From positions 310,001 through 374,000 of IMG/VR virus record IMGVR_UViG_3300044796_000657: a stretch of 64,000 nt of DNA, one strand, 5' to 3'. Position numbers and translations under genes: made by a program. Below are positions 2,144-33,790 of this stretch, piece after piece. Position 1 is the first letter of the stretch. Each line of letters starts with the position of its first letter. Below the pieces are notes generated by a model. The model made no database searches and had not been told where the DNA came from. It was given only the letters and a program-made list of their open reading frames with translations.

Positions 2144-3097
2144 TTGATGAAGGATAATACGATGATTGATGCGAAAGATATGCAAGAAAAGATGGCTCTC
2201 TGGGAAAAAACTGGCCTTCTCAAAGGTCTTTCTGACGATAAAAAATTGGCAGTTTCAATTTTGATGGAAAATCAAAGGGTTTTAAATGAAAGCCATGACG
2301 ATCAATCAGTGAAACGCTTCAATATACCTCTTGTTAGAAGATGGGTTGGTAATACCGTCTTATTTGATTTAGTGTCAGTCCAAGCATTGACAGAAGCCAA
2401 TTCTGAAATTTACCATTTTAGCAAAAACACGTTAATATCTTCGGAAGTCAAAACGACACCTCGAAAAATGAAAACGTCTTGGAGTCTTGAAGCCACTCAA
2501 TCATTACGATCATGTAACGGTATTGATGCCGAGATGGACTTGTTGAGCATTATAGCAGCAGAACTTACACTAGAAGTTGATCGTTCCGTTATTAGCGAAA
2601 TGCGAATTAACGCTGCTTTACATAAAAAGATAAACTTTAAGTATCTGTCAGGAACATATCAAGAAAAAAATGAAATTGTCAAACAGCAAATTTACAATGT
2701 CGGCAAAGAATCCAGTGAAATGTATGGTCGCTCTTTCCCCAATTGGATGATCTGCTCTCCTGAAATGAGAGAATCTGTCGGTAATAATACCAGCAAAAAA
2801 ACTCGTTCGTGGAATTTGGGGGTTCGGAAAGAAGGGGTCTTTGAGTTTGAAGATGCCACTATTAATATTTACAGCGATCCCCTTTTCCCTGTTGGTACAG
2901 TTCTCCTTGGATACAAAGGTGAACACGTATGCGACTCAGGTTATGTGTTTGCCCCGCACTTGATGGTTCAGGCATCACCCGTAGTTCTTGATCCTGATGA
3001 CTTTGTCCCACGACGACAGTTACTCAGCCAATTCAGCGGCAACCTCATTAATCCCACTTATTATTCCACTTTGGAAGTTAAAGATTTTCTCGCCTAA
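2144..3097 (+). CDS. Short, divergent T4 gp23-like major capsid protein paralogue
   Basis: gp23-like motifs WEKTGLL, ILMENQ, IPLVRR, VSVQ, RKMKTSWSLE, GIDAEMDL...EVDRSVI and GYKG...DSGYVFAPH. The start is possibly ATG 2162. Confidence 0.8.
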   Translation: MMKDNTMIDAKDMQEKMALWEKTGLLKGLSDDKKLAVSILMENQRVLNESHDDQSVKRFNIPLVRRWVGNTVLFDLVSVQALTEANSEIYHFSKNTLISSEVKTTPRKMKTSWSLEATQSLRSCNGIDAEMDLLSIIAAELTLEVDRSVISEMRINAALHKKINFKYLSGTYQEKNEIVKQQIYNVGKESSEMYGRSFPNWMICSPEMRESVGNNTSKKTRSWNLGVRKEGVFEFEDATINIYSDPLFPVGTVLLGYKGEHVCDSGYVFAPHLMVQASPVVLDPDDFVPRRQLLSQFSGNLINPTYYSTLEVKDFLA

Positions 3098-3882
3098 TGA
3101 GATATGAGCAAAAAGATGCGCTAGATAGGTTTTATACCAACCGTGAAACTGCCTCTCGTTGTGTATCGTTGCTTGATTTAACACAGTATGAATTGATTGT
3201 AGAACCATCAGCGGGGGATGGTTCTTTTGTGGATGCTATCAAAGTATCCCACTTGATTGCCTTGGACATCAACCCCGGTAGAGAAGATATTCAACAAGCC
3301 GATTTTTTTGACTTTACGACATCTATTGATGCTTCCAAAGTATTAGTCATAGGAAATCCGCCTTTTGGGAAACAAAACAGTCTGGCCTTAAAGTTCATCG
3401 CCCACGCTTCCAAGTGGGCGGATACAATTGCCTTCATTTTACCTTTGTCTTTTATGAAGCCATCGGTTCAAAATAAAATCAATCCGACATTTCATCTTTT
3501 TGTTTGTGAAGAGCTTCCGCCAATCAGCTTCTTATTTAATGGGGTGCCTTATGATGTGCCTTGCGTATTTCAGATTTGGCGAAAAGGTGAATTGCGAAAA
3601 CCGCAACGACCAGATACACCCATAGGGTTTGAATATACCAATTCCAATTATGGCAACGTTTGTGTGAGACGGGTTGGATATTATGCGGGCAAGGCATCCG
3701 ATGATATGACGAAAAACAAGGAATCTCATTTTTTCTTGAAAGTAGACACCAATAAGGTAGACACGGTTATTGCCGGGCTAAATCAACAAGTCTGGAATCA
3801 TAAAAACACCGTTGGGCCACGAACGGTATCTCGCTTCGATCTCAATCCCATTATTAATGGCATTCTCAAAGAAAATTGTTGA
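3097..3882 (+). CDS. N6-adenine DNA methyltransferase-like protein
   Basis: DRFYT, the SAM-binding motif VEPSAGDGSF and the catalytic motif GNPPF. Confidence 0.8.
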   Translation: MRYEQKDALDRFYTNRETASRCVSLLDLTQYELIVEPSAGDGSFVDAIKVSHLIALDINPGREDIQQADFFDFTTSIDASKVLVIGNPPFGKQNSLALKFIAHASKWADTIAFILPLSFMKPSVQNKINPTFHLFVCEELPPISFLFNGVPYDVPCVFQIWRKGELRKPQRPDTPIGFEYTNSNYGNVCVRRVGYYAGKASDDMTKNKESHFFLKVDTNKVDTVIAGLNQQVWNHKNTVGPRTVSRFDLNPIINGILKENC

Positions 3883-3907
3883 CAAGTGATATGGGATAGG
3901 TTATAGT
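3879..3907 (+). promoter_or_regulatory. Sigma70-type (early) promoter upstream of the SPFH pair
   Basis: TTGACA (3879-3884), a 17-nt spacer and TATAGT (3902-3907). Confidence 0.75.
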
Positions 3908-3952
3908 CTTTTGTAATCCGGGTTCTTTCTACCCGGCACACAGGAGAATCCC

Positions 3953-5563
3953 ATGAAGGATTGGATTGAGGCCAATGTCGGCAAGCTCATCGCTGCCGGT
4001 ATTGCCTTTGTACTGTTCGTGATTGTTGGTATCATCACTTACAGCAGTGTCCGCATCGACGTTCCGGCAGAACACATTGCCGTTTTGACACGGAATACCG
4101 GCGAAGACATCGATAACGGCGATGCGGTGGCACCTGATGCCAACCACAAAGGGCTGCAACTCGGTGTGTTAACCGAAGGCCGACACTTTTACAATCCGTA
4201 TTCGTGGTCGTCCAACGTCTACCCGATGATTACCATCCCTGACGGCAAGCTCGGCGTTCGCATCCGCCAATACGGGAAGAACCTTCCCTACGGCGACTTC
4301 CTTGCCACGCAGGAAGATCAGAAGGGTATCGTGCCCGAAGTGCTTCGCCCCGGACGCTATCCCATCAATGGCGTGATCAAGGGTGAAGAAGCCAAACGCC
4401 CCAAAAACGACTATGTGGAAATCATCGAGCTTTACACGCCGGTCACCATTCCCGCCGGATACCGTGGGGTGGTTGCCAATCTCGCCGGGCCGCTTCCCGA
4501 AAATCCCAACGTGATCCTCGTTCCAAAGGGTTGCCGTGGCGTTCAAGAGGAAACGCTCGATACGGGAACCTACTACCTGAACCCATACCTTCACCGTGTT
4601 AACGTTGTGGATTGCCGCTCGCAACGGTTCAATCTCGCCGAAACGGTAGACATGGGCTTTCCGAGCCGGGATGGATTTTGGGTGTCCCTCGACGGCATCA
4701 TCGAGTTCCGTGTCGATCCAGCCAAGGCCGCACATGTATTCGTCGTCTACAACGAAACCTCTAACGACAATGTCGCCGACTCCATCATCCACGACGAATT
4801 GATCCGCAAGGTCATCATGCCGAACGCCCGCTCATTCTGCCGACTGAAAGGGTCGGACAAGTCGGGCCGGGACTTCATCGGCGGCGAAACCCGGATTGAA
4901 TTCCAGAAAGATTTCCAAACGGCAATGGCGAAATCGTGCCGTCTCGAAGGCGTGGATGTCGTCCAAGCACTGATTACGAAGATTAACCCGCCGCAAGCAA
5001 TCGCCAAGCCGGTTCGGGATCGAGAAGTCGCCCACCAAAAGCAACAGCAATACGTGGAGCAGAAAAAGCAGCAAGTGGCCGAAGCGATGCTGGCGACGGA
5101 AAAGGCATTGATCGCCCAACGTCAAGCACTGGTCACAACGGAAACGACTGTGATACAGAACACGACCACTGCGAAGCAAAACCAGCAGGTGAAAGTCACC
5201 GAAGCAAATCGGGACTTGTCGGTTGGCAAGGCCGATCTCGAAGCAGCGAAGGATAAAGCCTCAGCGGTTCTTGCCGGGAAGAAAGCCGAAGCCGGGGTTA
5301 TCGACTTCCAAAATCTCGCTGATGCTGCCGGTTGGAAAACGGCGGTAGACGCATTGGGAGGCGATGGCGAAGCCTATGCCCGGTTCGTTCTCTACCAGAA
5401 GTTAGCACCGGCATTCAAGAAGATGATGGTTAACACTGGCGATAGCCCACTCATGAAAATCTTTGAGGGCTTCAACAAGGATAACCAAAAACCGGCACCA
5501 CCGGCAGGCGCACCGAAACCGGTTGCTGCATTGCCGGAACCGAAACCGCTCGAAAAGAAATAA
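3953..5563 (+). CDS. SPFH/band-7 domain membrane protein A (TM, three beta repeats, SPFH domain, coiled coil)
   Basis: N-terminal TM helix; repeats ending EGRHFYNPY, PGRYPING and TGTYYLNPY; SPFH core FPSRDGFWVSLDGIIEFRV; Ala/Gln/Lys-rich coiled coil. Confidence 0.85.
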   Translation: MKDWIEANVGKLIAAGIAFVLFVIVGIITYSSVRIDVPAEHIAVLTRNTGEDIDNGDAVAPDANHKGLQLGVLTEGRHFYNPYSWSSNVYPMITIPDGKLGVRIRQYGKNLPYGDFLATQEDQKGIVPEVLRPGRYPINGVIKGEEAKRPKNDYVEIIELYTPVTIPAGYRGVVANLAGPLPENPNVILVPKGCRGVQEETLDTGTYYLNPYLHRVNVVDCRSQRFNLAETVDMGFPSRDGFWVSLDGIIEFRVDPAKAAHVFVVYNETSNDNVADSIIHDELIRKVIMPNARSFCRLKGSDKSGRDFIGGETRIEFQKDFQTAMAKSCRLEGVDVVQALITKINPPQAIAKPVRDREVAHQKQQQYVEQKKQQVAEAMLATEKALIAQRQALVTTETTVIQNTTTAKQNQQVKVTEANRDLSVGKADLEAAKDKASAVLAGKKAEAGVIDFQNLADAAGWKTAVDALGGDGEAYARFVLYQKLAPAFKKMMVNTGDSPLMKIFEGFNKDNQKPAPPAGAPKPVAALPEPKPLEKK

Positions 5564-5614
5564 CCCTCACCCCACTCTTACTTTCCCCTTAACATTGAAA
5601 CAGGAGATTGCGTC

Positions 5615-7207
5615 GTGAACTGGAAACTCAAATTCGGCTTGCTTGGATTGCTCGCCGTGATGGTGATCTATGTCGGCGTGGATTGGCTTTGGAACCGGGT
5701 ACAAGTTCCAGACGGCCACAGCCTGCAACTGCGATACAAAGGTCCGATGTTCTTCGGTAAACACAATCAAGCCGAAGCAGGCAATTGGGCCAAAGAAGGC
5801 GAAGTCGGCATTTTGGAAAAACTCCGTGGGCCGGGCCGACACTTCTACTGCCCGATCTGGTGGGAACGTACGATTGTGCCGGATGTGATCGTCAAGCCGG
5901 GTGAAGTCGGCTTGGTGACGTGCAAGTTGGGTGCCTCCTTGCCAGAAGGCGAATTCCTCGTAGACGGCGAAATCGGGGATACGAAATTCAAGGGAACGCT
6001 TCGGAAGGTATTGGGGCCGGGTCGCTACCGGGTTAACCCTTACGGCTACGAAGTGAAAGTTGTTGGCACCCACACCATTGACTCTGGCAACGCCAAGAAG
6101 CAATCTGGTTGGGTTAACATTCCAACAGGATACGTCGGCGTCGTTTCCAACTTGGCTGACAATCCGATTACTCACCAGAAAACCGGCATTCAAGACAAGG
6201 TTCTGCCTCCCGGCCTGTATCCGATGAATCCGGCTGAACAACACGTGGACGTTGTGGAAATCGGCTTCCACGAAACCCACATTGACATTACCAGCGGTGG
6301 AAAGAACACGCTGGAAATGGCCAAGGCGGATGAAGAAGGAAATAACCTCGATGCGACATTGACCGGGGGTATTAACTTCCCATCAGCGGACGGGTTCAGC
6401 ATCACGATGGACTATACGGCAGTGTGGGGGCTGATGCCAAATCAAGCCCCGAATGCTATCCGCAAGTTCGGCAACGTCGGCCTTGTGGAGCAGAAGGTGG
6501 TGTTGCCACAAATCGAATCGATCTGCCGCAACAATGGTTCCGAATATCCGGCAGTGAAGCTGTTGGTCGGCGAACAGCGAGAAATCTTCCAGAACAAGAC
6601 TCTGACTGAATTCCAAGCTGTTCTGGCAGCAAAAGACATTACCTTACTCTACGGATTGGTACGGCACATCTATATTCCAACAGATGTTCGCCGTCCTATT
6701 CAAACGGCATACATTGCCGACGAGTTGAAGCTGACACGGGAAGTGGAACAGCTAACGGCCAAAAAGGAAGCCGAATTGCGGGAAGCAGAGCGAAAGGTTG
6801 AACAGGCAACACTCGAAACCAACGCTCTGACGACGAAGTTGGTTGCCGAAAAATTGGCAGACGGTGACAAGATAGTTGCCGAAACGGACGCCGAAACCCG
6901 GAAGCTGGTTGCCACAATTAACAAGCAAACCGCCGAATTGAAGGCGCAAGCGACACTTGTGGCAGGGCAAGCGGAAGGTGAAGGCAAGATGGCTATCGAG
7001 ACGGCGAAAGCCAGCAAGTTCAAGATGGCTGTGACCGCCTTTGGAACACCCGCTGCCTACAATAATTGGGTGTTCGCTACCGCTCTGCCCGATGGATTGG
7101 AATTGAACCTGTTCTATTCGGGCACCGGAACCCTGTGGACGGACTTGAACGGCGGTAAGTTCAACATTAACGTGCCAGCACCGGCAGCAGAAGCTCCGAA
7201 GAAGTAA
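5615..7207 (+). CDS. SPFH/band-7 domain membrane protein B, paralogue of A
   Basis: TM helix; repeats PGRHFYCPIW, PGRYRVNPY and PGLYPMNP; core FPSADGFSITMDYTAVW; coiled coil. Confidence 0.85.
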   Translation: MNWKLKFGLLGLLAVMVIYVGVDWLWNRVQVPDGHSLQLRYKGPMFFGKHNQAEAGNWAKEGEVGILEKLRGPGRHFYCPIWWERTIVPDVIVKPGEVGLVTCKLGASLPEGEFLVDGEIGDTKFKGTLRKVLGPGRYRVNPYGYEVKVVGTHTIDSGNAKKQSGWVNIPTGYVGVVSNLADNPITHQKTGIQDKVLPPGLYPMNPAEQHVDVVEIGFHETHIDITSGGKNTLEMAKADEEGNNLDATLTGGINFPSADGFSITMDYTAVWGLMPNQAPNAIRKFGNVGLVEQKVVLPQIESICRNNGSEYPAVKLLVGEQREIFQNKTLTEFQAVLAAKDITLLYGLVRHIYIPTDVRRPIQTAYIADELKLTREVEQLTAKKEAELREAERKVEQATLETNALTTKLVAEKLADGDKIVAETDAETRKLVATINKQTAELKAQATLVAGQAEGEGKMAIETAKASKFKMAVTAFGTPAAYNNWVFATALPDGLELNLFYSGTGTLWTDLNGGKFNINVPAPAAEAPKK

Positions 7208-7210
7208 TCC

Positions 7211-7702
7211 GTGTCATGTTGCCGGGGTAGCAATACCCCGGCGTTTTTTCCACCTTCAATTTTAGGCTTCATCATGCGATGGCAACCATATCTGACAAAT
7301 GCCTCGGTGGCTTCCATTACTTCCGCATCCATTAAGCTAGATGCGGAGCATTATGGAGAATGGTTTAAGGATTTGGACAATCCTACGGATGAAGAGGTCG
7401 CCAATTACTTTCGCCACTTCTTTTCTGGTATGAGTGATGAGTGGGAAATTCCTATCAATGGCAATTTCCGCATCGATAAATTCGAAGGCGAGTTGGATGA
7501 TCTTCCAAAAGGAACAGTTGTCCAAGAGGGCAAAGAGGAAATGAAGCGACTAGATGTTAATAAAATTCAAGTCATCATAGATGGCGAAATTTACATCCTC
7601 GAAGCCGCTGCTCCAATCCGAGCCAAACGAGTTGATGCCGAACAAGAAGAAACAGAAACAAAGCCTCTCAAGCAAAAAGCAATGGAACCGCCTTACGAGT
7701 GA
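7211..7702 (+). CDS. Hypothetical acidic protein (true start probably downstream, near 7274)
   Basis: Long ORF with protein-like composition; its 5' end overlaps the terminator. Confidence 0.55.
   Translation: MSCCRGSNTPAFFPPSILGFIMRWQPYLTNASVASITSASIKLDAEHYGEWFKDLDNPTDEEVANYFRHFFSGMSDEWEIPINGNFRIDKFEGELDDLPKGTVVQEGKEEMKRLDVNKIQVIIDGEIYILEAAAPIRAKRVDAEQEETETKPLKQKAMEPPYE
7221..7249 (+). terminator. Intrinsic terminator closing the SPFH unit
   Basis: GCCGGGGTA-GCAA-TACCCCGGC stem-loop followed by a T-tract. Confidence 0.8.
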
Positions 7703-7738
7703 CCATACACCACTTATCACAACTAATGGACTAAAAAA

Positions 7739-8350
7739 ATGGGCTTCTCCTTCATCATTGATACCGACAAATACGCAGGTAATTTTGAACGAGAAATCTG
7801 TGCTTTTGTCACGGGTCGTATCGGTGAAGACGGCGTTGGTGAAGAAGAAGGCACCCAATACATCAAAGACGGCTACGATCCATTGGAATTTGTTGAGAAC
7901 CGCTTTGATGAAGATGATCTTGAGGATGATACATATCGACCAGTTAATGTTTATCCTACACCGGGATGGTTCAACCACGGACTAGGCAAAGAATTCAAAG
8001 ACGGGGAAGAGGAAAAGGCTCTCAAAATACTCAAGCAGGATGCTGCCGATAACTGCAAGAAGCAAAATGATAAAATCAAAAATTATAAGCATTGGCCACT
8101 GGAGTCACGGGAACAATCTATCAAGCAAAATACAGAAACAATGCTTGCGGTTGTTCAGCGTGAAACCATCATCAAGTACCCCGCCTATCTATCGGTAGCC
8201 ATTTTTTGCAGCCGTCAACCTACCACAGACGAAATGTTTTTCATGCAAGAGCGGGCCAGACTCTATGTCAAAGACCGTAATATTAACATCAGTGGTTTCC
8301 GTTTACTTGTTGATTCCAAGCCGGAACTTATCAACGAGAAGGACATGTAG
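7739..8350 (+). CDS. Hypothetical protein
   Basis: 203-aa ORF with no recognised motif. Confidence 0.6.
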   Translation: MGFSFIIDTDKYAGNFEREICAFVTGRIGEDGVGEEEGTQYIKDGYDPLEFVENRFDEDDLEDDTYRPVNVYPTPGWFNHGLGKEFKDGEEEKALKILKQDAADNCKKQNDKIKNYKHWPLESREQSIKQNTETMLAVVQRETIIKYPAYLSVAIFCSRQPTTDEMFFMQERARLYVKDRNINISGFRLLVDSKPELINEKDM

Positions 8351-9472
8351 ATCGCTACATTGCTGAGGGTGAGCAATTGCGACATTTCGTTTCTCATTTG
8401 GGTCGGTATCTAAATTGTACAGTTCACTTGTTTCGGTGTTGTGTGTGTAGATGTATTTCCACTTTCCTAATCGTACCATATGCTGAGTGCCCACAAAACG
8501 GCTTCTATTAGACTTGGCAAAGGCCCAATCTTTCCATTTCTTGCCTTTCAACAAAGACGTTAAATTTCTACCTTGCCCGAATTTTTCAACACCCAACTTG
8601 CGAGCAATTGTTGTTGAAACGTCCAATGATGAACAAACATTGTCTTTGACACCATAATGCTCACCATCTGAGATAATCAATGGCACCTTGATTGCGCCAT
8701 CGTACAGACAAGGTTTACTCCACAAGCCGTGGTGTCCCATCATATTTCCGTGGTCAGACGTATAAATCACTTCGCTATTATTGATTAATCCAGTTGAATG
8801 AAGACTGTTCATCAATTCACCAACTCTTTCATCCATCCACATAATCATTCCATAATATGATGCCAATACTTTTCTGGATTCTTCTCTGGTGAGTTTGGGT
8901 TGATTGACAAATTTGGCAGCACCTTCGTGTGCAGGCCACGGGGGGTTTGGAAACTGTATTTGATCCATGAATCGATCAACATATCTTTTTGCTGGAACCG
9001 CCAAAGGTGGATGTGGTGCCAAGTAATTCAGCATGGCAAAAAATGGTTGTTTGGGTGCCCCTTCAAATAAACGACATACATGTCTGGTTGATAGAATGTC
9101 ATGCTTATGATTTTTATTAACTTCTACATTTTTGGCCTTTAGGAGTTTTGGTCTATGGTTTCTTTTTTGAGCAAATCTCGGACAAAGAAGATTGAATTTA
9201 CCTTTGATCGTACTCATTTTGCCGACATAAAAGGAGTGTATTTCTTGTTGTGATAGTTTATAGGCAAGTGCTGGTTTTTGAGAGTTTGATTGACCGGAGA
9301 GAAAGAGTGATCTTGCCGAAGTGCATGAAGGACTGGCAGCGTAGCAATTGGTTAAGGTTGTTCCATTTTTTGCGAGCAAGTCCAAGTTTGGGGTATGAGC
9401 AATTTGATTTCCGGCACAACCCATGAAGTTGTGATTGTGTCCATCTGACATAATAAGAATAACATTTTTCAT
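8303..9472 (-). CDS. Formylglycine-type sulfatase (choline-sulfatase-like)
   Basis: NVILIMSDGH, the active-site motif SPSCTSAR, HPP, IYTSDHG, GLWSKPCLYDG and ELYNLDTDPNE. Confidence 0.88.
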   Translation of the reverse strand: MKNVILIMSDGHNHNFMGCAGNQIAHTPNLDLLAKNGTTLTNCYAASPSCTSARSLFLSGQSNSQKPALAYKLSQQEIHSFYVGKMSTIKGKFNLLCPRFAQKRNHRPKLLKAKNVEVNKNHKHDILSTRHVCRLFEGAPKQPFFAMLNYLAPHPPLAVPAKRYVDRFMDQIQFPNPPWPAHEGAAKFVNQPKLTREESRKVLASYYGMIMWMDERVGELMNSLHSTGLINNSEVIYTSDHGNMMGHHGLWSKPCLYDGAIKVPLIISDGEHYGVKDNVCSSLDVSTTIARKLGVEKFGQGRNLTSLLKGKKWKDWAFAKSNRSRFVGTQHMVRLGKWKYIYTHNTETSELYNLDTDPNEKRNVAIAHPQQCSDLHVLLVDKFRLGINK

Positions 9473-15088: not shown

Positions 15089-16285
15089 ATGGCCATTAAA
15101 AGCTTGCTGGACAACGACATCTATAAAATTTTCATGCAATATGCCGTACTCAAAGAGTTTCCGGGTACGCATGTCCGTATGGCTTTCATGAACCGTCGTA
15201 AAACCGATGTTCTCTCAAAATCGCTTTTGAAATCTTTAAGGGAAGTCGTAAATTCCGTGAAAGGCATGAAAGCCGATTCATGGGAATTGTCACACATCCA
15301 TAAACACTACCCATTCCTGCCAAATTGGTATATGGATTGGCTTAGTGAGTTTGCCCCAAATCCCGCCCACGTTAATATAACGGAAAACGGTGAAATTACC
15401 GTTGAAGGCCCGTGGGAACAAGCCATGTGGTGGGAAATTCCCATCCTCTACACAATCAGCGAATTGTTCTGCGGGGAAATCGATGCTGAAATAGGACACA
15501 TTCCTCGTAGCGAAATAGTCAAATCCACATTGACCAAAATGGAAATTCTGAAAGGTCACTACAGTCGCTATGGCGAGGCAATCGAACACGATCCTTGTCA
15601 ATACGTTCAATTCGGCTGTCGTCGTCGTCGCTCATACGATATTGAGGATGAAGTTGTTCGTACAATGAAAAAGGCCGATCATCCGAATATGCTCGGTATT
15701 AGCAACATCCACTTGGCAGCGAAATACGATATTAGGCCGGTGGGCACAATGGCTCATGAGTTCGTTATGGGTGTCAGTGCATTGAAAAGCCTGCGATATG
15801 CCAACCGTGAGGCAATGGAGACATGGCTTCGTGTTTTCAAGGGCGAATTGGATATTTTCCTGCCCGATACTTTTGGAACGAATGTGTTCCTGAAAGACTA
15901 CACTCGCCAATTTGCTCAAGCATTCAATGCGACTCGACAAGATAGCGGGTCAGCGTATGAATACGGCGAAAAACTCATTAACCATTACAAAACAGTAAAA
16001 CTTGATCCAAAAACCAAATCGATCACATTCAGTGATGGGTTAACTGCTACAGAATCAACGAACATCCAGCAACACTTCTACAATCGAATTAAAAGAGCTT
16101 ACGGCATCGGCACACACTTCACTAACGATTTCATGAACAGACCTGCCATGAATATCGTGATGAAGTTAACACATGTCAACGGAATTCCGGTCGTCAAGCT
16201 CAGCGACGTTCCCGGCAAAGCCTGTGGCGATCCCAATGCTCTCAAAGCAGCAAAGTGGGTGTTTCTCGGCGAACCTTTAGTATAA
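15089..16285 (+). CDS. pncB: Nicotinate phosphoribosyltransferase
   Basis: SLLDNDIYK, FGCRRR, GTMAHEF (phospho-His), LPDTF, RQDSG, FSDGL, GIGTHFTND and KLSDVPGK. Confidence 0.93.
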   Translation: MAIKSLLDNDIYKIFMQYAVLKEFPGTHVRMAFMNRRKTDVLSKSLLKSLREVVNSVKGMKADSWELSHIHKHYPFLPNWYMDWLSEFAPNPAHVNITENGEITVEGPWEQAMWWEIPILYTISELFCGEIDAEIGHIPRSEIVKSTLTKMEILKGHYSRYGEAIEHDPCQYVQFGCRRRRSYDIEDEVVRTMKKADHPNMLGISNIHLAAKYDIRPVGTMAHEFVMGVSALKSLRYANREAMETWLRVFKGELDIFLPDTFGTNVFLKDYTRQFAQAFNATRQDSGSAYEYGEKLINHYKTVKLDPKTKSITFSDGLTATESTNIQQHFYNRIKRAYGIGTHFTNDFMNRPAMNIVMKLTHVNGIPVVKLSDVPGKACGDPNALKAAKWVFLGEPLV

Positions 16286-18600: not shown

Positions 18601-19346
18601 TGCATTTCGTTATAAGAAACAAAGATTTTATTTTCACAGAAACCGTATTGCCGGGCGATGATGTTCTTACATCCAATGGCGGTAAGGTATTTCAAGATTA
18701 CATCCAAGAAACTAAAGTTTTATGTGGGCCTTACTCTGAATGTAAATTTCCACAAAGTTACTTCGGCAACATCCGACCTTGGGATTACGAGCGGATTTTA
18801 GAATACGGGGACTTCGCTGCCAATCAAAAGGTTTTAGAATGCGGTGGGCTTCATAGCTATTTCGCTATTGCCACTTCCCAAAAAGTTAATCATTACACTT
18901 GTACTGATAGTTTTTATTGGGCGACTCGTGACTATGCTCAAAATCCACAATTACAAAGTCCTCAAGAGTGGTGTAAGTATTTGATTGGTAAAGGTCGTGG
19001 CAAACTTCACGCCGAAGAAGCCGACTTGCAATCCATGAAGTATGCCAACGAACAATTTGATAGAGTTGTCTGTATCAGTGTGATTGAGCATGTACACGAA
19101 GATCGCAAGGGTATTCTGGAAATGATGAGGGTTCTTAAGCCGGGCGGTTTATTGCTTTTGACAACTGAATACAATCCCACTTGGTCTAAGCCTTACGCTG
19201 AAACAGACGGCAGTTATTATCGTGTATATGATCAAAGTGACTTGAGTAATCTTTTGGCTGGTCTTGATGTTGAAGTAATGCAAGCCCAAGGTGGGGATGT
19301 TCGTGACGGGCAATTTACTACTACGTTCATACGGATCAGAAAATGA
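18600..19346 (+). CDS. Class I SAM-dependent methyltransferase
   Basis: VLECGG, FDRVVCISVIEH and RVLKPGGLLLLT. Confidence 0.85.
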   Translation: MHFVIRNKDFIFTETVLPGDDVLTSNGGKVFQDYIQETKVLCGPYSECKFPQSYFGNIRPWDYERILEYGDFAANQKVLECGGLHSYFAIATSQKVNHYTCTDSFYWATRDYAQNPQLQSPQEWCKYLIGKGRGKLHAEEADLQSMKYANEQFDRVVCISVIEHVHEDRKGILEMMRVLKPGGLLLLTTEYNPTWSKPYAETDGSYYRVYDQSDLSNLLAGLDVEVMQAQGGDVRDGQFTTTFIRIRK

Positions 19347-20752
19347 ATGTATCTGACATCATTAATAAGTTCAAAATTCAAAATGCCAAAACGAGACTGA
19401 GAATAGCAGTTATTGGTGATACGCTCGTTGATGAATACCGTTACGGCCAAGTCAACCGGATTTCGCCCGAATTTCCCGTTCCGATATTAACTTCCGAGTC
19501 AGACGCCAAGGAATCTTGTCCCGGTGGCGCTGCGAATGTATGCCATCAAATGACACACATGAACGCCGAAGTCTTTCTCGTAGGCTTTGTGGACAATGTC
19601 ACACGTAAATTGTACGGTCAGCAAACCTTCAATATTGACTACTGCGTTGATTTGCCAAGCGGCTTTGTACCAATCAAAGTTCGATTTTATGAAGGCGACT
19701 TTCCTCTCCTGCGATGGGATATTGAAAGTCCTAACTATGGCGAAAAAGATTTAAGTGAATTGAGACGAAAAATTCTCATTAATTTTGAATCTCTCATCAA
19801 AGAGGGATTGAGTGCGGTCATTATTAGTGATTATAATAAAGGCATCTTTGACGAAGCTACCGCTCGTTCTCTCATGCAATTATGTACTTATTACCGCATT
19901 CCTACTATCGTTGATCCCAAGAAACCACCAGTGAGCAAATGGTTCGGGGCTACAGTCATTAAGCCAAATGCGGCTGAAGCCAAGACGCTAACTGGTGAAT
20001 CTACTATTTCATCTCAATTGAGTAAATTATGTGAAAATGCTCATACGAGTATGATCACCCAAGGCGGCGACGGTGTTATTTGCCAAATTGGAAAAGAAAT
20101 TTTTGAATACATGTCCCCCGTACCACGATCTAAGGAGGTGAACAGTGTTATCGGGGCGGGGGACTGTTTTATAGCAATGTTAACTCTTGGGATGTCGCAC
20201 GGTATGACAACTCAAGAAGCTGTAGCATTGGCATTTGAAGCCGGTGCTGTTTACGTTAAAGCAAGACATAATAAACCAATTCATCTTAATGAAATACTCG
20301 CAAGAGTTGATGTTGAAGGCTCTCGTATCGTCAAAGCCGAAGAGTTAAACTTTAACAAAAACGAACGTATTGTTTTCACAAATGGTTGTTTTGACGTTAT
20401 TCATGCTGGTCACTTGGATACTTTGAAATTTGCCAAATGTCAAGGTGATCGATTGATTGTCGGTGTTAATTCGGATGCTTCTGTCAAGCGACTTAAGGGT
20501 GATAAGCGACCCATTTATGGACAAGATGAACGTGCTAGATTTTTAGCGTCAATGTATTTCGTAGATCATGTTGTGATTTTTGATGAAGATACACCAGCCG
20601 AATTGATTAATAAAATTCAGCCACACATTGTTGTTAAGGGCGGCGATTACTCTATTACGGATGTTGTTGCCGGTAATGCCAAAGTTGTTTTGTCGCCTCT
20701 CAGAAAAGGATACTCTTCAACTAATACAATTAATAAACTATCTGACGACTAA
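19343..20752 (+). CDS. hldE: Bifunctional heptose-7-phosphate kinase / heptose-1-phosphate adenylyltransferase
   Basis: PfkB half: GDTLVDEY, RISPEFPVP, GGAANV, SDYNKG and GAGD. C-terminal half: FTNGCFDVIHAGH, GVNSD, EDTP and VKGGDY. Confidence 0.93.
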   Translation: MNVSDIINKFKIQNAKTRLRIAVIGDTLVDEYRYGQVNRISPEFPVPILTSESDAKESCPGGAANVCHQMTHMNAEVFLVGFVDNVTRKLYGQQTFNIDYCVDLPSGFVPIKVRFYEGDFPLLRWDIESPNYGEKDLSELRRKILINFESLIKEGLSAVIISDYNKGIFDEATARSLMQLCTYYRIPTIVDPKKPPVSKWFGATVIKPNAAEAKTLTGESTISSQLSKLCENAHTSMITQGGDGVICQIGKEIFEYMSPVPRSKEVNSVIGAGDCFIAMLTLGMSHGMTTQEAVALAFEAGAVYVKARHNKPIHLNEILARVDVEGSRIVKAEELNFNKNERIVFTNGCFDVIHAGHLDTLKFAKCQGDRLIVGVNSDASVKRLKGDKRPIYGQDERARFLASMYFVDHVVIFDEDTPAELINKIQPHIVVKGGDYSITDVVAGNAKVVLSPLRKGYSSTNTINKLSDD

Positions 20753-22500: not shown

Positions 22501-24165
22501 TTACCAACCAAATTCCTGTAAAAGTTTATGATGTGGTCTTTGTGTGTCGAACATCATTCTTGGCAACAAGTCAACATCTGGATCTAGATTGGCCAACAAA
22601 TCGCCCGTTTCAATACCAGCTTCCAATTCTTTCCACAATGCCTTAACGTCGTCACCCGAAAAACTCTTGTGAATGATATTAGCATCAGGCGTAGCACCGA
22701 TTGGCATTTCCCGGTTCAAAACGTCAGAGATGTACAATGCTATACTGAGGCAAATCACCAAGTCGTCATGCTTGTTCTTTTGTGCTTCGGCTCTTTGCTT
22801 TTCTTGATTGTAAATGAATGTTAACAATTCCCGAATAATACGAACGCTTCGAATCTTGACAAGACGATTCAACATACACGTTTGTAATGCTTCCATACAA
22901 ACTGGACGCAATACTTTATTCATGTTAACGCCGGGACGATCTCTAGTTGCCCCTTGCGTAAAGTAAAGGTTGTCATAACTCAATGAGTGTTCAAGTCGTT
23001 CACAAACAGCTTGGCCCGGTCCCATTGAGTTTTCCACAATAATCAAAGCATTGTTATAAAGTTTTCCCACATGCGCCAAAACTTGACTGAACTTATATGT
23101 CGGAATTGTCTTGGAATAAAATTCAGCCACTTGCGTTAACGTGGAAATGTCCATGACAATAAAGGCGCAGTTATCGCCTTCTTGTCCAACACCCATAGCG
23201 GCATCGGCAGTAATGAGATATTCACGACCGGATTTAGGCATTTCCCAAACCCACATCGCACCGGGTTCGTATTTTGCATTCGGAAGTTCGTCTTCTTTGA
23301 AGCTTTCTTCGGGGATGATGTCCCATTCACCCATCATCTTTTTAATTGGATTAGAGCATTGTTTTTCAAATTCTTTGATAACTTCACCGGGAATGTAAGT
23401 ATCACCGGAGCCGAGGAATGAACCTTCGTATTCCTGTGCGAAGCCTTTTTCGCCGATGTTAGCTCGTGTTCGCTTTTCCCATTCGGCATTGTTATAGTCG
23501 GGGTGTTCATGCCAGTCAATATGTACAACAAAAAACTGACTTCTCTTGTCAATAGCCTTTTGGTATTGTTCGTAGTACCAACCACCGACGCCACCGATAC
23601 CGTTAACCGTGGAGATGATAATAGCATTACCACCGGTTGAGAGCGTAGGATACATGCTCTTCCAGTGTTCTTCCATACCTTGAACGAACGCCGCTTCATC
23701 GATAATTAGATAAGTTAAAGCACGGGAACGAGCAGCGGCAGGAGTATAGAACCACATAACCGAACGAGTTTCAGCAAACTCTTTTTCGTGGTCGTTATCG
23801 TTGTTCATTTCCGGACGAAGCCATTCCGGAAGTTCATTCTTGGCATTAGCTACCGTTTTACCTACAGCTTTAGCTTCACGGTCAGTTTTAGAAGCAATGA
23901 GAATACGCTGATCGGTGTAGAAAATGCACTTCCATAACATCCACATAGATGTTACAGTGGTCAGACCGGCTTGACGGAATTTCTTAACAATGCTAAACTG
24001 ATTAGATTCAAAGTCAGAGATAACTCGATTTTGGAAGTCGTATAGAACGAATGGTACCAAACCCTTTTTCGGGTGGGTAATCTGTAAGTACTTCTCAGAA
24101 AAGTACTTGAAACTATTTCGACATCTGATAAACTCTCTAAGTTGCTCGTCATTTAATTGGCCCAT
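22501..24165 (-). CDS. terL: Terminase large subunit (T4 gp17-like)
   Basis: Walker A region KFRQAGLTT, Walker B IIDEAAF, ISTVNG, QEYEGSF, nuclease motif ITAD and HDDLV. Confidence 0.95.
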   Translation of the reverse strand: MGQLNDEQLREFIRCRNSFKYFSEKYLQITHPKKGLVPFVLYDFQNRVISDFESNQFSIVKKFRQAGLTTVTSMWMLWKCIFYTDQRILIASKTDREAKAVGKTVANAKNELPEWLRPEMNNDNDHEKEFAETRSVMWFYTPAAARSRALTYLIIDEAAFVQGMEEHWKSMYPTLSTGGNAIIISTVNGIGGVGGWYYEQYQKAIDKRSQFFVVHIDWHEHPDYNNAEWEKRTRANIGEKGFAQEYEGSFLGSGDTYIPGEVIKEFEKQCSNPIKKMMGEWDIIPEESFKEDELPNAKYEPGAMWVWEMPKSGREYLITADAAMGVGQEGDNCAFIVMDISTLTQVAEFYSKTIPTYKFSQVLAHVGKLYNNALIIVENSMGPGQAVCERLEHSLSYDNLYFTQGATRDRPGVNMNKVLRPVCMEALQTCMLNRLVKIRSVRIIRELLTFIYNQEKQRAEAQKNKHDDLVICLSIALYISDVLNREMPIGATPDANIIHKSFSGDDVKALWKELEAGIETGDLLANLDPDVDLLPRMMFDTQRPHHKLLQEFGW

Positions 24166-27712: not shown

Positions 27713-28161
27713 CTATTGATGAATTTGTTGATGAAATGCAGGGCGACCTAGTAAACGAATACACTCATATGCTTTTTTATATGCATGCGAGTTTTACCTT
27801 AAACGGCTACGAAAGAATGTTTGCCGTTCCTTGGCTGACGGCACAATCCAATGAGGAAATGGGTCACGTTCGCCAATTCGCAGAAAAGATCAGGGCTTTC
27901 GGTAAAATGCCTACTCACGCCAATGGTAAAGGCTATCAAGGCGGTGAGTATTCCTTTACGACCCTCAAAGAAATTTTAGAATTCGCTCTTGCTTTAGAGA
28001 AGACGGTTATTGAAAATTATCACAAGAGATTGGGACAAGCACAAAAATTATTTGAAAAAACTGGCAAGTATTACGATTTGGTTATTTTCTACGAAGAACA
28101 TATTGAACATTCTCAACATGACGTTGATGAAATAGTCAAAATGTTGTCTTCCACACGGTAA
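27709..28161 (+). CDS. Ferritin/bacterioferritin-like diiron protein
   Basis: NEY, EEMGH, LEKTV..NY and EHSQHD in a four-helix-bundle spacing. Confidence 0.8.
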   Translation: MTIDEFVDEMQGDLVNEYTHMLFYMHASFTLNGYERMFAVPWLTAQSNEEMGHVRQFAEKIRAFGKMPTHANGKGYQGGEYSFTTLKEILEFALALEKTVIENYHKRLGQAQKLFEKTGKYYDLVIFYEEHIEHSQHDVDEIVKMLSSTR

Positions 28162-28163
28162 GT

Positions 28164-28193
28164 AAAAAAGCCACTCAGATGAGTGGCTTTTTT
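28164..28193. terminator. Bidirectional terminator
   Basis: A6-GCCACTC-AGAT-GAGTGGC-T6. Confidence 0.8.
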
Positions 28194-28195
28194 GT

Positions 28196-28444
28196 TTAAC
28201 CTAATGCTGTATCCCCTAACGTAAACGGCAAAACCGCACCTTCTTCCATAGAAAGTGAAGATGAAGACGAAGAGGAGGAGGAGGAGGAGGAGGAACAAGG
28301 GTCATCATCTATAACATAATCAATACTATTAGTATTATTAGTTGTTGCTGCTGTTTGAAAAGCGCCAACTAATCTACGCAAGCTGTAATTTGGATGCACT
28401 AGCGATTTGATTTTTCGTAATTCGATAAGGGTTGGGTTAGACAT
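28196..28444 (-). CDS. Small late protein with an internal poly-Ser tract
   Basis: 13 consecutive Ser encoded largely by a TCC triplet repeat; ATAAATA upstream at 28455-28461. Confidence 0.6.
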   Translation of the reverse strand: MSNPTLIELRKIKSLVHPNYSLRRLVGAFQTAATTNNTNSIDYVIDDDPCSSSSSSSSSSSSSLSMEEGAVLPFTLGDTALG

Positions 28445-28457
28445 ATTGTATACTTAT

Positions 28458-29282
28458 TTATGGAGGCGTTACTAAATCACCACTCGTCATAACGTAAGGG
28501 ATTTCTGTAATTTGGTCAGGTTTAGTATTAGCACCACTATAAACATAATCTATCTGACGGGCCAAATCACCAACTCTGGCACCAGCAGCGTATTCAATAA
28601 TTGTCGTAATGCGGTCGCTACCATCTACAGTAATTTTCTGGAAGTTAAAGATACCAGACCGGCCACGCAACAGCTCCCAATCGGCTTGCTCATTCGTATA
28701 ATTCAAACCGGCATCCGCAATAATAGCCTGATCAATAGCTTGTGAGACATCGAGCTTTTGAAGAACACCCAAGGAGTCTGGGAATGATGTAATGCTGCTG
28801 ATTGTGTGTCTGTCAAAGTACAAAGGCATTTCAGCAACGCCAGCCTTTTTGTTAAATCTCAACTTGCTTTCAGCACCGCTATTTGAGATGTAAACCTTGA
28901 ATTGGGTTCTCTGTCTTAGAGACTTAACGATAACATAATTAACACCGTGGTTATCGGTATTGACACTAGCCGCAAACAAAGCTTTGAAAGTGCTATTGGC
29001 ATTCAAAGCAGTAACTACTTCAGTAGCAGACACAGCAGAGGAACTTACGGCACCAGCGGCAATATTAACAGCTAATTGTGCGTAGCTTTTGCCGACATCA
29101 AATGAATAATTGAATGTTAATGTATTTACAACTGATAAATCGAATGGTTCTGGATTGAACGCCATCATCAATTGCGAAGAATTGATATTGGAGTTAACTA
29201 CAAACGTCATATTGTATTGCTTATCAGACAGCAATAAGTTACCACGAAACTCGGTGTCAAATACGTTTTGGTAAAACGGCAT
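28458..29282 (-). CDS. Probable virion structural protein
   Basis: Ala/Ser/Asn/Val-rich and beta-rich; the start is probably MPFYQNVF at 29282. Confidence 0.55.
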   Translation of the reverse strand: MPFYQNVFDTEFRGNLLLSDKQYNMTFVVNSNINSSQLMMAFNPEPFDLSVVNTLTFNYSFDVGKSYAQLAVNIAAGAVSSSAVSATEVVTALNANSTFKALFAASVNTDNHGVNYVIVKSLRQRTQFKVYISNSGAESKLRFNKKAGVAEMPLYFDRHTISSITSFPDSLGVLQKLDVSQAIDQAIIADAGLNYTNEQADWELLRGRSGIFNFQKITVDGSDRITTIIEYAAGARVGDLARQIDYVYSGANTKPDQITEIPYVMTSGDLVTPP

Positions 29283-29283
29283 A

Positions 29284-29793
29284 TTAATATCCCCACAAGG
29301 CTTTAAATCGTTGCACAATCCCCTGTGCTTTTTTACGCTCATCCACTTTTCTCTCTTCTTTTTCTTCAAGAGATTTTCTGGCTTCTACTGGTCGAGCATA
29401 ACCGTAAAGCCTGTCAACTGCATCTTCCCATTCAGTACCGGGAACGTACGACCTCAACTCACCTTCAATTTCCATATAAGTTCTATAACCCTGATAATGG
29501 ACAATCAATTCCGCTGGTCGGCTATCATAAAACATCAATTTGATACACAAATTGATTCCTCGTCTTAGCCCATCGAAGTAATAACCTTTAAGGTAGACTT
29601 CGCCATCCCCGTCATCCAAAATGTCGGGCGTATCCATTTCCCAGAAATCGGGCAGCATTGAATATTGAACGGTTTGTTCGACTACCGGTCTGCCAAAAGC
29701 CTTTACGATTACGTGAAGTTTACTGGTCAATTCTTTTCGGGCCGCTTCAATCGTCCGTTTTTCAACGAGCGCTTTGATCCTCTCTTCAATCAT
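29284..29793 (-). CDS. Hypothetical protein
   Basis: 169-aa ORF. Confidence 0.6.
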   Translation of the reverse strand: MIEERIKALVEKRTIEAARKELTSKLHVIVKAFGRPVVEQTVQYSMLPDFWEMDTPDILDDGDGEVYLKGYYFDGLRRGINLCIKLMFYDSRPAELIVHYQGYRTYMEIEGELRSYVPGTEWEDAVDRLYGYARPVEARKSLEEKEERKVDERKKAQGIVQRFKALWGY

Positions 29794-29912
29794 GTCACTT
29801 TATATAGTATTTTTTCAAGAAAGTGATATTCAATGTACTTACTTAATTTTTCATTTATTTCATTGCTACTTCATATATATTGCCCACTATCGAAAGGGGG
29901 GGGTATATATAT

Positions 29913-31331
29913 ATGAAAATATGGAATTCATTAAAGGCGTTTTTTGTTACCCCAATAGTAAAGGCTTTTAGTGGTTTAATACATTACCAAGCTAACGATC
30001 CAACGAGGCCAGAGCTTGCGGTAGTGATGGAATTGCCACAGCCGCCAACCCCTTGCCCGCCATTCGTGGTTGAAGGATTTACGGGCAAAGATGGACCGGA
30101 TGGATCAATTGAGCGGCAAGCTTGTGGCGTTTACACCACAATGACTTTGTCGCTAATCCAATGCCAAAACATTCTTACTAAGCCGATTATTCGTTGGCCA
30201 GCCCTTTGCCAGCTTTTTGCCAATCCACGTTCTGGCAAAATGTTCAATGCTTATTACGACCGATACTATCTCAACTTCTTTTACGATTTAGACCCAAAAA
30301 CCAATCAGACGGTTTATACGTGTGAATCGACAGATGTTGTTGCCCACGAACTCGGACATGCCATTCTTGACGCTCTCCGACCCGACTTGTGGGCCGTTCA
30401 AAGTGTTGAAATCCAATCTTTCCATGAAGCTTTTGGCGACATTAATGCGATGTTAACGGAACTTACAATGAAGGAAATGGTTGCTGACGTTTTGAAAGAA
30501 ACGAATGGTGATTTGAGAAAGAGTAATGTTGTTGCCCGTATCGGCGAACAAATGGGACTTGCTATCTACCATGCTAAGGGTAATGATGGTATGCCGGATA
30601 ATTTTGCTTTGAGAACCGCTATCAATAACTTCCAATACGTTGCCCCTGAAACATTGCCAACACGTGCGCCGGATGATACTTTGGCTGGTGAACCACACAG
30701 TTTCAGCCGAGTTTTCGCAGGCGGATTCTACGATGCATTGGTCAATGTTTACGATAAAGAAGTTGCAAGTGGAAAACTTCCTGTTGATGCCTTAGAGCAA
30801 GCTAGATTGAAAATGTCTAAAATCATTTACAACAGTATCCGTACTGCTCCCGTGACGACACGATTCTTCGGGTCAGTTTTGAAGGCAATGTTAACTTATG
30901 ATTTCCAAATGGGATTAGAGTGTGGTGAAGCAATTAGAACTGGTTTCGCAGGACACGGCATTTATGCTCCGGAAGATTTGAATGTCAATATGGTGGCTAT
31001 TGATTTGACGGCACAAGATTCGTTGTTTATGCTTGGCCAAAACCAAGTTGAAACGGCCAGAACGGTTGATTTTGACTTTGACAAGAGCGATCCTCTTTAT
31101 TCTTGTATTATTGAATTGGCAAATGCTCATCAACCACGCCAGTTTGTTACTGACAATTTAGAAGATTTACAAAAAGCCATTGGTGCTGCCAAACACTCAT
31201 TAATGGTAATTCGTGATCATGATCGTGTTGCCTCCGGACCAACTGCCGGAAGGGTTCACGAAAAGGAATTTTCCGTTATTGATGGCCGTTTAGTGCGTAA
31301 TTACTTCAGTTGCTGGTTTCATCAACATTAG
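29913..31331 (+). CDS. Thermolysin-like (M4/M36) zinc metallopeptidase
   Basis: FNAYY, DVVAHELGH (HExxH), SFHEAFGDI (third ligand) and EPHSFS. Confidence 0.8.
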   Translation: MKIWNSLKAFFVTPIVKAFSGLIHYQANDPTRPELAVVMELPQPPTPCPPFVVEGFTGKDGPDGSIERQACGVYTTMTLSLIQCQNILTKPIIRWPALCQLFANPRSGKMFNAYYDRYYLNFFYDLDPKTNQTVYTCESTDVVAHELGHAILDALRPDLWAVQSVEIQSFHEAFGDINAMLTELTMKEMVADVLKETNGDLRKSNVVARIGEQMGLAIYHAKGNDGMPDNFALRTAINNFQYVAPETLPTRAPDDTLAGEPHSFSRVFAGGFYDALVNVYDKEVASGKLPVDALEQARLKMSKIIYNSIRTAPVTTRFFGSVLKAMLTYDFQMGLECGEAIRTGFAGHGIYAPEDLNVNMVAIDLTAQDSLFMLGQNQVETARTVDFDFDKSDPLYSCIIELANAHQPRQFVTDNLEDLQKAIGAAKHSLMVIRDHDRVASGPTAGRVHEKEFSVIDGRLVRNYFSCWFHQH

Positions 31332-32122
31332 GTATAATGGTCGTATCCATGAGGGGTACGGCAATGAACGTGGCAACAGAATACGTTATGCGAAACAACG
31401 TAGCAGCTAAAATGCTCAAGCTGCCTTGTTCGTTGTTTTTAGAAAGTTTAAGCAAACGCAAAAAGAAAATGACGAAATCTGCTCTGGTTCTGGAAACAGA
31501 CGGTGCGGATTTCGTCACCGTGACGAGATACGACTTAACTCAACAAAAATCCAAATCGGTACCCGAACCTTCATACAAAACGCAAGTTAACCGGGCTGAC
31601 ATTTTCACAAGTCCGTTTATCGTAATTCCCAACATGTTCCTCATGCCTTTCCACGAAACGCCTTATACGTTCGATGGCAAGCAAGAACAATCGATACCTT
31701 TGAGTGTTATTCAAGAAAAAGAATACACGAAAACCGTGGATGGGTTCTTCCAATCCATGAACAATAAAACCGCCCGTGAAACTTGGCTTTGGCGGGTTTT
31801 TGAAAAAATTAACATTTCCCCCGAAACCCGAACTCTTTATGCTGAGTCTGGGTTTGCGGAAGCAACCGCATTGTCTCGCTTTGATGCTGCTCTACACCAG
31901 ATTTGGGTACAGTGGAAAAGCACTTTGCTGGATTTTTCTGGTCCCGCATCAGAATTGATTTTCAACAAAGTCTATAAAGGAAAGATTAACGCTTATCCAG
32001 AAAGACTGGTACGATCAGGCATGGATGAATTTATGCCTGTCATGCGTCCTAGCCGACAGAGAGAGAGAATCATTTTCCCCCCATTGGGTATGCGGCCACC
32101 TAGTAGAACCATTCGTGAATAA
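31310..32122 (+). CDS. Hypothetical protein
   Basis: 270-aa ORF. Confidence 0.5.
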   Translation: MLVSSTLGIMVVSMRGTAMNVATEYVMRNNVAAKMLKLPCSLFLESLSKRKKKMTKSALVLETDGADFVTVTRYDLTQQKSKSVPEPSYKTQVNRADIFTSPFIVIPNMFLMPFHETPYTFDGKQEQSIPLSVIQEKEYTKTVDGFFQSMNNKTARETWLWRVFEKINISPETRTLYAESGFAEATALSRFDAALHQIWVQWKSTLLDFSGPASELIFNKVYKGKINAYPERLVRSGMDEFMPVMRPSRQRERIIFPPLGMRPPSRTIRE

Positions 32123-32150
32123 TGATTTTTGTATTAAGAATCTACATACT

Positions 32151-32954: not shown

Positions 32955-32978
32955 CATTTAGGTAATTTATGGTAGACT
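32951..32978 (+). promoter_or_regulatory. Sigma70-type promoter of pncA
   Basis: TTGACA, a 16-nt spacer and TAGACT with an extended TG; contains TTATGGTAGACT. Confidence 0.65.
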
Positions 32979-32996
32979 TAATATAAGGAGTCTACC

Positions 32997-33602: not shown

Positions 33603-33604
33603 TC

Positions 33605-33790
33605 ATGGCTAAAAAGACTCAAACCAAACAAGAGCAAATTTCGCAAGAAGAGCAGTATATCGCATTCCTTCAAAAGCGATTAGCTTCTGAGCATTACAAG
33701 GAAGTTACTTCAAAGGAAGACTACGCCAAGGAAAAGGCAAAGTATGAAAAGGCAAAGTTCAAATTGAAGATGTTGAAGGAACAGCGTTAA
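33605..33790 (+). CDS. Small basic hypothetical protein
   Basis: 61-aa ORF directly downstream of pncA. Confidence 0.6.
   Translation: MAKKTQTKQEQISQEEQYIAFLQKRLASEHYKEVTSKEDYAKEKAKYEKAKFKLKMLKEQR

Follow-up and report, generated by a model that had tools for sequence, protein, structure and literature searches.

A two-gene SPFH operon with its own promoter and terminator

The window analysed here is a stretch of 64,000 nucleotides, positions 310001-374000 of the 430,229-bp IMG/VR record IMGVR_UViG_3300044796_000657; coordinates below are window positions unless stated. Near its start we noticed an operon of two adjacent open reading frames (ORFs) encoding paralogous SPFH-domain proteins, here denoted A and B. 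The operon (3879-7249) comprises the following elements:

3879-3907, plus strand: sigma-70-type promoter, TTGACA-17 nt-TATAGT, identical to the consensus at 11/12 positions (TTGACA 3879-3884, TATAGT 3902-3907)
3953-5563, plus strand: SPFH subunit A (P0001), 536 amino acids, Band_7 domain; ribosome-binding site AGGAG at 3942-3946
5615-7207, plus strand: SPFH subunit B (P0002), 530 amino acids, GTG start, Band_7 domain; ribosome-binding site AGGAG at 5602-5606
7220-7249, plus strand: intrinsic terminator with a 10-bp stem (7 GC pairs), a 4-nt loop and T6; stem-loop at 7220-7243

The promoter is the top-scoring site within 3000-8500, ACAGGAGA is found upstream of both ORF A and ORF B, and the terminator has a fold energy of -19.6 kcal/mol. 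The 5' leader contains a small hairpin (3918-3936; CCGGG, 9-nt loop, CCCGG), located downstream of the promoter and ahead of the A ribosome-binding site. An alignment of the two proteins over 491 columns gives 26% identity (E 1e-33). An original prediction, made from the sequence of this stretch, had described a self-contained operon with a near-consensus sigma70 promoter, two paralogues of ~530 amino acids, a terminator and a GC content above that of the flanks, and the analysis recovered every one of these features.

Counted per 500 nt, the operon has 51-57% GC and both flanks 41-44%, a difference of ~12 GC points. A 3-kb segment containing the operon reaches 53.7%, which is 3.5 standard deviations (sd) above the genome mean of 43.0% (sd 3.1%), and A and B have GC contents at third codon positions (GC3) of 0.64 and 0.61, respectively, compared with a mean of 0.43 (sd 0.08) for 228 genome ORFs. 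Such contrasts would suit passenger DNA or an assembly artefact, that is, host DNA that was mis-joined or inserted recently and neutrally, a reading that we regard as very improbable and that the data have already largely refuted. In a second assembly (Logan), made from a peat DNA run that may be the source sample, one 72-kb contig spans 3000-8500 with zero differences, and the 3' junction lies within a contig (7154-7485) of a different sample. The assembly chimera that the original prediction had raised as a danger is thus not supported. We looked for direct or inverted repeats flanking the operon as signs of a mobile element and found none. High GC3 is also seen in a phiEco32-like COOH-NH2 ligase gene (62327-63331, minus strand), which with 0.68 lies near the top of the genome, like the SPFH pair.

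Architecture of A and B

Both proteins match Pfam Band_7 (PF01145) far above its gathering score of 23.6, A with 95.2 bits (residues 165-374, E 6e-27) and B with 78.7 bits (residues 168-386, E 7e-22). Their parts are arranged as follows:

3986-4051, plus strand: N-terminal transmembrane helix of A, ~residues 12-33 (hydropathy 2.68; model helix 2-33)
4052-4441, plus strand: two extra beta-repeat modules of A, residues 34-93 and 94-163 (hhalign, model)
4442-5074, plus strand: SPFH/Band_7 domain of A, residues 164-374, of which the first ~60 residues are repeat 3 (Pfam)
4994-5476, plus strand: long helix of A (coiled-coil wall), ~residues 348-508, followed by a Pro/Ala/Lys-rich tail (DSSP)
Within 5615-7207, plus strand: parts of B, namely transmembrane segment ~7-25, repeats 28-90 and 91-165, Band_7 168-386 and a long helix to ~490

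Strong hydrophobicity is confined to a single N-terminal segment in each protein; in A, the top 19-residue hydropathy window begins at residue 12. Profile-profile comparison showed that three segments are related within and between A and B, mostly at 95-98% probability (E 1e-8 to 1e-15), the first segment of B being a weaker match. In an AlphaFold model covering residues 30-352 of A, for which 52 sequences of A and B were used (mean confidence, pLDDT, 89), one strand pattern occurs three times and is followed by an alpha/beta SPFH core. A full-length model (26 sequences, pLDDT 66) was used for secondary structure only; DSSP assigned helices to 348-467, 472-497 and 500-508, with low confidence past residue 440. 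The order of parts put forward in the original prediction (transmembrane anchor, repeats, SPFH domain, helix) thus holds for both proteins. Its claim of three tandem beta repeats stands in that three related modules exist, and needs correction in that the third belongs to the SPFH domain. Since Band_7 begins with the third repeat, what is new is the two extra modules between the transmembrane helix and an otherwise normal SPFH domain.

The helix region of B contains three 16-nt copies at 33-nt spacing (6836-6917), giving an 11-residue period (KLVAEK / KIVAET / KLVATI) of a kind also seen in some right-handed coiled coils.

The bulk of A and B may face the periplasm, as suggested by a weak positive-inside trend: the mean number of Lys and Arg residues before and after the transmembrane helix is 2.4 vs 1.6 in A and 1.6 vs 1.3 in B, and acidic residues are fewer before it.

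The pair is shared with Planctomycetota

Protein A has >1,385 homologues at 57-82% identity, and every named one is from Planctomycetota. Orthology to A and B is full-length and in the same order (50-82% identity over >90% of the length). Planctomycetota chromosomes carry the A-then-B pair at 50-69% identity, and a Gemmata-like contig also holds it. A one-genome-per-species collection yielded 467 stretches with a relative, the best 80 of which are almost all from Planctomycetota (Pirellulaceae, Planctomycetaceae, Gemmataceae, Thermoguttaceae and other members of the phylum). Linkage of the two genes is strict: among the 73 loci with enough downstream DNA, a B orthologue (50-78% identity) is adjacent downstream of A in 73/73, with a median gap of 68 nt. 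In a 7.56-Mb chromosome the pair is located among housekeeping genes (e.g. LepA, formyltransferase), without GC contrast; no conserved partner gene was found beside the pair in 67 bacterial loci.

A phylogeny against host SPFH pairs, as suggested with the original prediction, placed the phage copies inside the bacterial ones (tree of A, rooted with B). Together these data largely show that the operon is a conservative copy of a Planctomycetota operon and not a phage invention, which favours the supply of a host function over a new weapon. The literature search revealed neither a functional study of an SPFH protein from a phage nor a paper on the planctomycete A/B pair. Hinderhofer 2009 describes a paired SPFH11a/b subfamily, the taxa of which its text does not state.

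Examination of five planctomycete genomes detected FtsH in 5/5 and HflK (TIGR01933) above cut-off in 0/5, which by analogy makes A/B a candidate functional stand-in for HflK/C; in one of the five, the A/B pair represents the only SPFH genes. The idea that the family is universal in the phylum was rejected: at E 1e-60 or better it was present in 35/301 sampled genomes, indicating an accessory function and not universal housekeeping.

This patchy presence would also be expected if bacterial A/B were an anti-phage or stress accessory system and the phage copies were decoys or dominant-negative counter-defence. The pair is moreover a compact, self-contained two-gene unit, and related repeat-SPFH proteins (see below) carry VWA domains, which also occur in conflict systems. 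We consider this explanation improbable. Neither A nor B has a PADLOC match (E 0.01 or better), the pair in bacteria is surrounded by housekeeping genes without GC contrast, and a dominant-negative copy should lose conserved interface or core residues, which the phage copies keep.

Repeated capture of the pair by giant phages

It is largely shown that the window is part of a giant T4-like phage from a peat metagenome. The record is 97% complete according to CheckV and carries the IMG/VR label provirus; protein A is on a 614-kb contig, and the part trimmed from this contig may also be phage. A Gp23-type capsid gene (2144-3097, plus strand, E 2e-30) is located 0.9 kb upstream of the operon and a T4-type large terminase gene (22501-24165, minus strand) ~15 kb downstream, and many genes of the window match phage families only. 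Genes for a tyrosine integrase, PspA and FtsH were looked for in the phage record, and none is present. The Gp23-type protein has only 317 amino acids and matches the C-terminal two thirds of the family; it may be a paralogue or vertex-type protein.

At the nucleotide level, neither the operon nor 12.7 kb of DNA downstream of it had a match among 50,697 phage records. Viral contigs carrying the pair were found by an alignment-based scan, whereas a scan with a single protein found none. The A/B pair is present on at least six other phage-like contigs, with flanks of 31-61% GC. They include a 107-kb phage-like contig (L003), whose copies are 80% identical and whose flanks are unrelated to the window phage; a 356-kb IMG/VR phage (L005); a contig of 664 kb that carries genes for T4 gp13 and NAD salvage (L090); two viral contigs of 48-61 kb (L006 and L007), the second of which shares further genes with the window phage; a further carrier (L008); and short contigs from two studies (L094 and L095) with flanks of 30-32% GC. 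A limited literature search found no paper describing giant phages of Planctomycetota.

Phage copies fall in at least four places on the A tree, and the phage label needs at least four changes. Window A groups with L003 and P0003 (support 97), and L005 has the copy on the 7.56-Mb chromosome as its sister (support 100). An approximately unbiased (AU) test of a group named after the tree had been seen rejected a single phage clade (log-likelihood difference 86.8, p 0.004). A common origin is possible for the copies of the window, L003 and L090 (support 88). We conclude that the pair entered giant phages independently at least twice and probably four times or more.

In each phage that carries the pair, its GC content exceeds that of the flanks, by 1.6 to 10 points, so that at least part of this offset is intrinsic to the genes. 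For this reason, and because synonymous divergence (dS) is saturated against all relatives, GC contrast as proof of recent capture was rejected. The same two observations speak against neutral passenger DNA: the nearest phage copy (L003) is separated from the window copies by saturated dS (1.8 or not computable), with a nonsynonymous divergence (dN) of 0.16-0.18.

Genes of NAD salvage recur in phages that carry the pair. The window encodes NAPRTase at 15089-16285 (plus strand), and NAD-salvage genes (NAPRTase, NAD synthase) are also found at 501-8193 of L090 and 1-2716 of L007, with 45-76% identity across these three otherwise different SPFH-carrying phage contigs.

Promoter class and presence in an RNA library

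The phage genome contains 35 sites that match TTGACA/TATAAT at 11 or more of the 12 positions, compared with ~13 expected, the majority with a perfect TTGACA. As judged from sequence, then, the operon uses a promoter type in wide use by this phage, which further argues against passenger DNA. Sites of this kind resemble a phage-wide promoter class, with 23/35 on the minus strand. Such a promoter was looked for ahead of the pair in the other phage carriers, and none was found. Sigma-70-type promoters in T4-like phages are early promoters, and early expression of the operon is plausible on this basis.

A metatranscriptome from a different sample and study yielded contigs with >=99% identity over most of the operon, demonstrating that the same phage segment exists in another sample. 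Both the gap between A and B (4961-5948) and the 3' junction (7154-7485) are included in these contigs, and among the pieces listed none is shown to bridge the 5' junction. One of them stops at 3909, two bases past the -10 box. Word depth in the library falls at the terminator from 9.7-15.3 to 2.8-4.5, which is weak evidence, and is also lower immediately upstream of the promoter, a pattern compatible with a separate transcription unit.

A and B are predicted to pair

Complex prediction with A residues 30-500 and B residues 25-500 gave a score of 0.65, compared with 0.00 for the best of 3 controls; in calibration, that mark was reached by 51/78 solved complexes and 2/108 mismatched pairs. In the predicted dimer, the two chains are in contact along the repeats, the SPFH domain and the helix, in a parallel arrangement. 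Co-assembly of A and B, which the original prediction had assumed, is thereby supported at the level of structure prediction, and the strict co-occurrence of the two genes is independent support for binding. Given the likeness to SPFH cages, whose subunits alternate in a ring in the prohibitin and erlin types (PMC12624060), we infer a closed A/B ring or dome.

Phage copies resemble unchanged host subunits

The window copies keep nearly all positions that are conserved in at least 95% of the bacterial sequences (100/103 in A, 129/135 in B), which is within the bacterial range, and the terminal branch of window A measures 0.19, compared with a tree median of 0.31. Taken with the low dN, these sequences indicate that the phage copies are under purifying selection, with no sign of decay or changed function.

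This bears on the possibility that the phage takes over the host cages, its subunits mixing with or replacing those of the host and thereby trapping or shielding particular membrane proteins, for instance to keep FtsH from phage membrane proteins or to block membrane-acting defence effectors or superinfection, much as the original prediction had proposed. SPFH cages such as HflK/C are known to enclose FtsH (PMC12624060), in this genome a strong promoter of the phage type precedes the pair, and repeated capture by different phages suggests a strong benefit. In addition, the N-terminal tails of phage A proteins have 4-11 residues, compared with a bacterial median of 16 (automated start calls). 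The conserved positions and the short branch described above argue in the opposite direction, as do the lack of any PADLOC match for A and B (E 0.01 or better) and the fact that no anti-defence or exclusion genes were recognised beside the operon. We therefore regard a take-over as unlikely, although it is a better candidate than the decoy. The phage copies resemble unchanged host subunits, which favours upkeep of a host function; upkeep or top-up in a long infection is the likeliest role, ranked above take-over, decoy or exclusion, and an attack on the cell is less likely.

Proposed role during infection

The reading towards which we lean, by a modest degree, is that the phage makes host-type heteromeric A/B cages to keep or control membrane-protein housekeeping during infection. 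A and B would alternate side by side in a ring, which would close into a dome over a patch of the cytoplasmic membrane, like HflK/C, prohibitin 1/2, erlin 1/2 and flotillin 1/2. The two extra modules would lengthen the cage wall and give it a half-vault-like shape, the bulk of both proteins lying on the periplasmic side. Transcription of the pair from the phage's own sigma-70-type promoter would supply host-type cages during infection, and their purpose may be upkeep or control of host membrane-protein housekeeping and of membrane integrity under a very large virion load. In the phages both genes are retained without exception, under purifying selection, suggesting that the cage is worth carrying during infection. 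A similar upkeep idea has been put forward for SPFH and PspA genes of huge phages in a survey (bioRxiv 10.64898/2026.10.24.761521).

Several observations weigh against this reading. The complex prediction concerns a heterodimer only, and because similar heteromers have already been solved, its pass may partly reflect memory of them and represents likeness, not proof. An excess of Lys and Arg before the transmembrane helix is seen in only 52/84 A and 35/74 B sequences, and the tail of the phage's own A has no net charge bias. The RNA-library contigs also cover neighbouring genes, and carry-over of DNA is possible. The family is confined to 35/301 sampled genomes of the phylum, neither FtsH nor another client adjoins the pair in the 67 bacterial loci, and some of the transfers may have run from phage to bacterium.

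On balance we favour an operon that is a recurrently captured host cage operon and not a phage-invented weapon. What is new here is an unnamed paired repeat-SPFH family with a vault-like fold and its repeated capture by giant planctomycete phages. SPFH cages (HflK/C, prohibitin, erlin, flotillin, stomatin, vault) are an active structural topic, and the A/B pair is small, self-contained and suited to co-expression and cryo-EM. The presence of the same two genes in giant phages of very different GC content provides a natural experiment, and the pair gives a practical handle on giant phages of Planctomycetota.

Other features of the phage genome

Elsewhere in the window we observed envelope-related host-like genes at 8303-9472 (minus strand), 19343-20752 (plus strand), 48196-49473 and 52991-55866 (plus strand). 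The set consists of a sulfatase, a PfkB-kinase/cytidylyltransferase fusion and three group-1 glycosyltransferases, and suggests alteration of the host surface. An ORF for a LAGLIDADG-type homing endonuclease (40607-41629, minus strand) adjoins an SF2 helicase-like gene (39043-40602, minus strand). Outside the window, record positions 28000-46000 (L093) form a larger GC-rich island, with 50-55% GC compared with 43%. This island has few long ORFs, a UvrD-like helicase and a ParB-HTH protein, showed no tRNA or Rfam match, and may be foreign or mobile.

Comparison with the vault and other SPFH assemblies

Foldseek assigned the SPFH fold to the A model (E 1.6e-10). Structural matches to prohibitin, erlin, HflK/C, stomatin, flotillin and QmcA (VIA Z 10-13.7) involve the SPFH part only; over model residues 132-318, Z is 13.7 for prohibitin, 12.7 for erlin and 12.4 for HflK/C. 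Among solved chains, only major vault protein (MVP) aligned with the whole model (6bp7_A, Z 11.3, 243 residues), model residues 1-323 corresponding to MVP 319-652, i.e. its last repeats and shoulder. The MVP R1-R7 fragment 3gf5_A gave Z 7.0, and the extra modules of A aligned, among solved chains, with MVP repeats R7-R8 only. The Foldseek comparison that had been suggested with the original prediction agrees with this whole-model match.

At the level of sequence the picture differs. Pfam Vault and MVP_shoulder were absent from the A/B scan at E up to 1, and a profile of the two repeat modules found no chain among PDB sequences at E up to 10, indicating that the likeness of the repeats to those of MVP is structural only. 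The nearest solved protein by sequence is prohibitin 1 (E 4.5e-4). The vault-like architecture of the original prediction is therefore borne out in fold and domain order, and does not extend to a family link in sequence.

At a threshold of E 0.001 the two-module repeat profile matched 1,087 cluster representatives, 113 of which also passed a threshold of 1e-30; matches reached E 1e-93, with up to 14 repeat copies ahead of Band_7. Band_7 was located downstream of the repeats in 7/8 of the longest-array proteins checked, and a C-terminal VWA domain was present in 2. Four such proteins (P0122, P0123, P0129 and P0134) have 1,284-1,802 amino acids and 9-14 copies of the repeat, which has no Pfam name; the three that were scanned with Pfam (P0122, P0123 and P0134) all carry Band_7 after the repeats, two of them with a C-terminal VWA. 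The top AlphaFold DB cluster matches are proteins of the same kind and span the whole A model. These results demonstrate an unnamed bacterial repeat-SPFH group, of which A and B are short, membrane-anchored, paired members. A more far-reaching proposal, which we put forward tentatively and consider doubtful, is that A and B form a membrane-anchored heteromeric half-vault, an SPFH dome with a wall extended by repeat modules of MVP type, that they are the smallest members of a large repeat-SPFH superfamily that would link SPFH cages to the eukaryotic vault, and that capture was repeated because the cage is limiting in long infections.

SPFH proteins of phages have been noted before. The survey of huge phages (bioRxiv 10.64898/2026.10.24.761521) lists 420 SPFH-domain proteins and reads them as part of a host-membrane management programme; it makes no mention of Planctomycetota, of subunits in pairs or of repeats at the N terminus. 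Matches of BFVD phage SPFH proteins (280-310 amino acids) to the A model are limited to the SPFH core, over ~190 columns.

A close parallel is HflK/HflC, the FtsH-regulating cage of Proteobacteria. Like A/B, it is encoded by adjacent paralogous SPFH genes, and in its subunits a membrane helix at the N terminus precedes an SPFH domain and a long helix; they form a side-by-side heteromer, as predicted for A/B, whose bulk is periplasmic, as it may be for A/B. Unlike HflK/HflC, A and B have ~530 amino acids and two extra beta modules, and they match no NCBIfam model, including HflK (TIGR01933) and HflC (TIGR01932), at E 0.01 or better. The cages of prohibitin 1/2 and erlin 1/2 share with A/B the order of transmembrane segment, SPFH1, SPFH2, coiled coil and C-terminal tail, with a core root-mean-square deviation of 1.8-2.8 A, whereas their subunits belong to eukaryotic organelles, have ~270-340 amino acids and no extra repeats, and are 14-19% identical. 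The many-repeat bacterial proteins (e.g. P0122, 1793 amino acids) have the same repeat module followed by Band_7, yet differ in carrying 5-14 repeats, often within 700-1800 amino acids, and in some cases a VWA domain, and they are not known to be paired. MVP resembles A/B in its tandem beta repeats, SPFH-like shoulder and long helix, in this order. It differs in being a soluble homo-39-mer with nine repeats and no membrane anchor, whereas A and B each have a hydrophobic N-terminal segment and occur as an obligate pair. For the arrangement of repeats before an SPFH domain, as found in A and B, the vault is the only solved counterpart.

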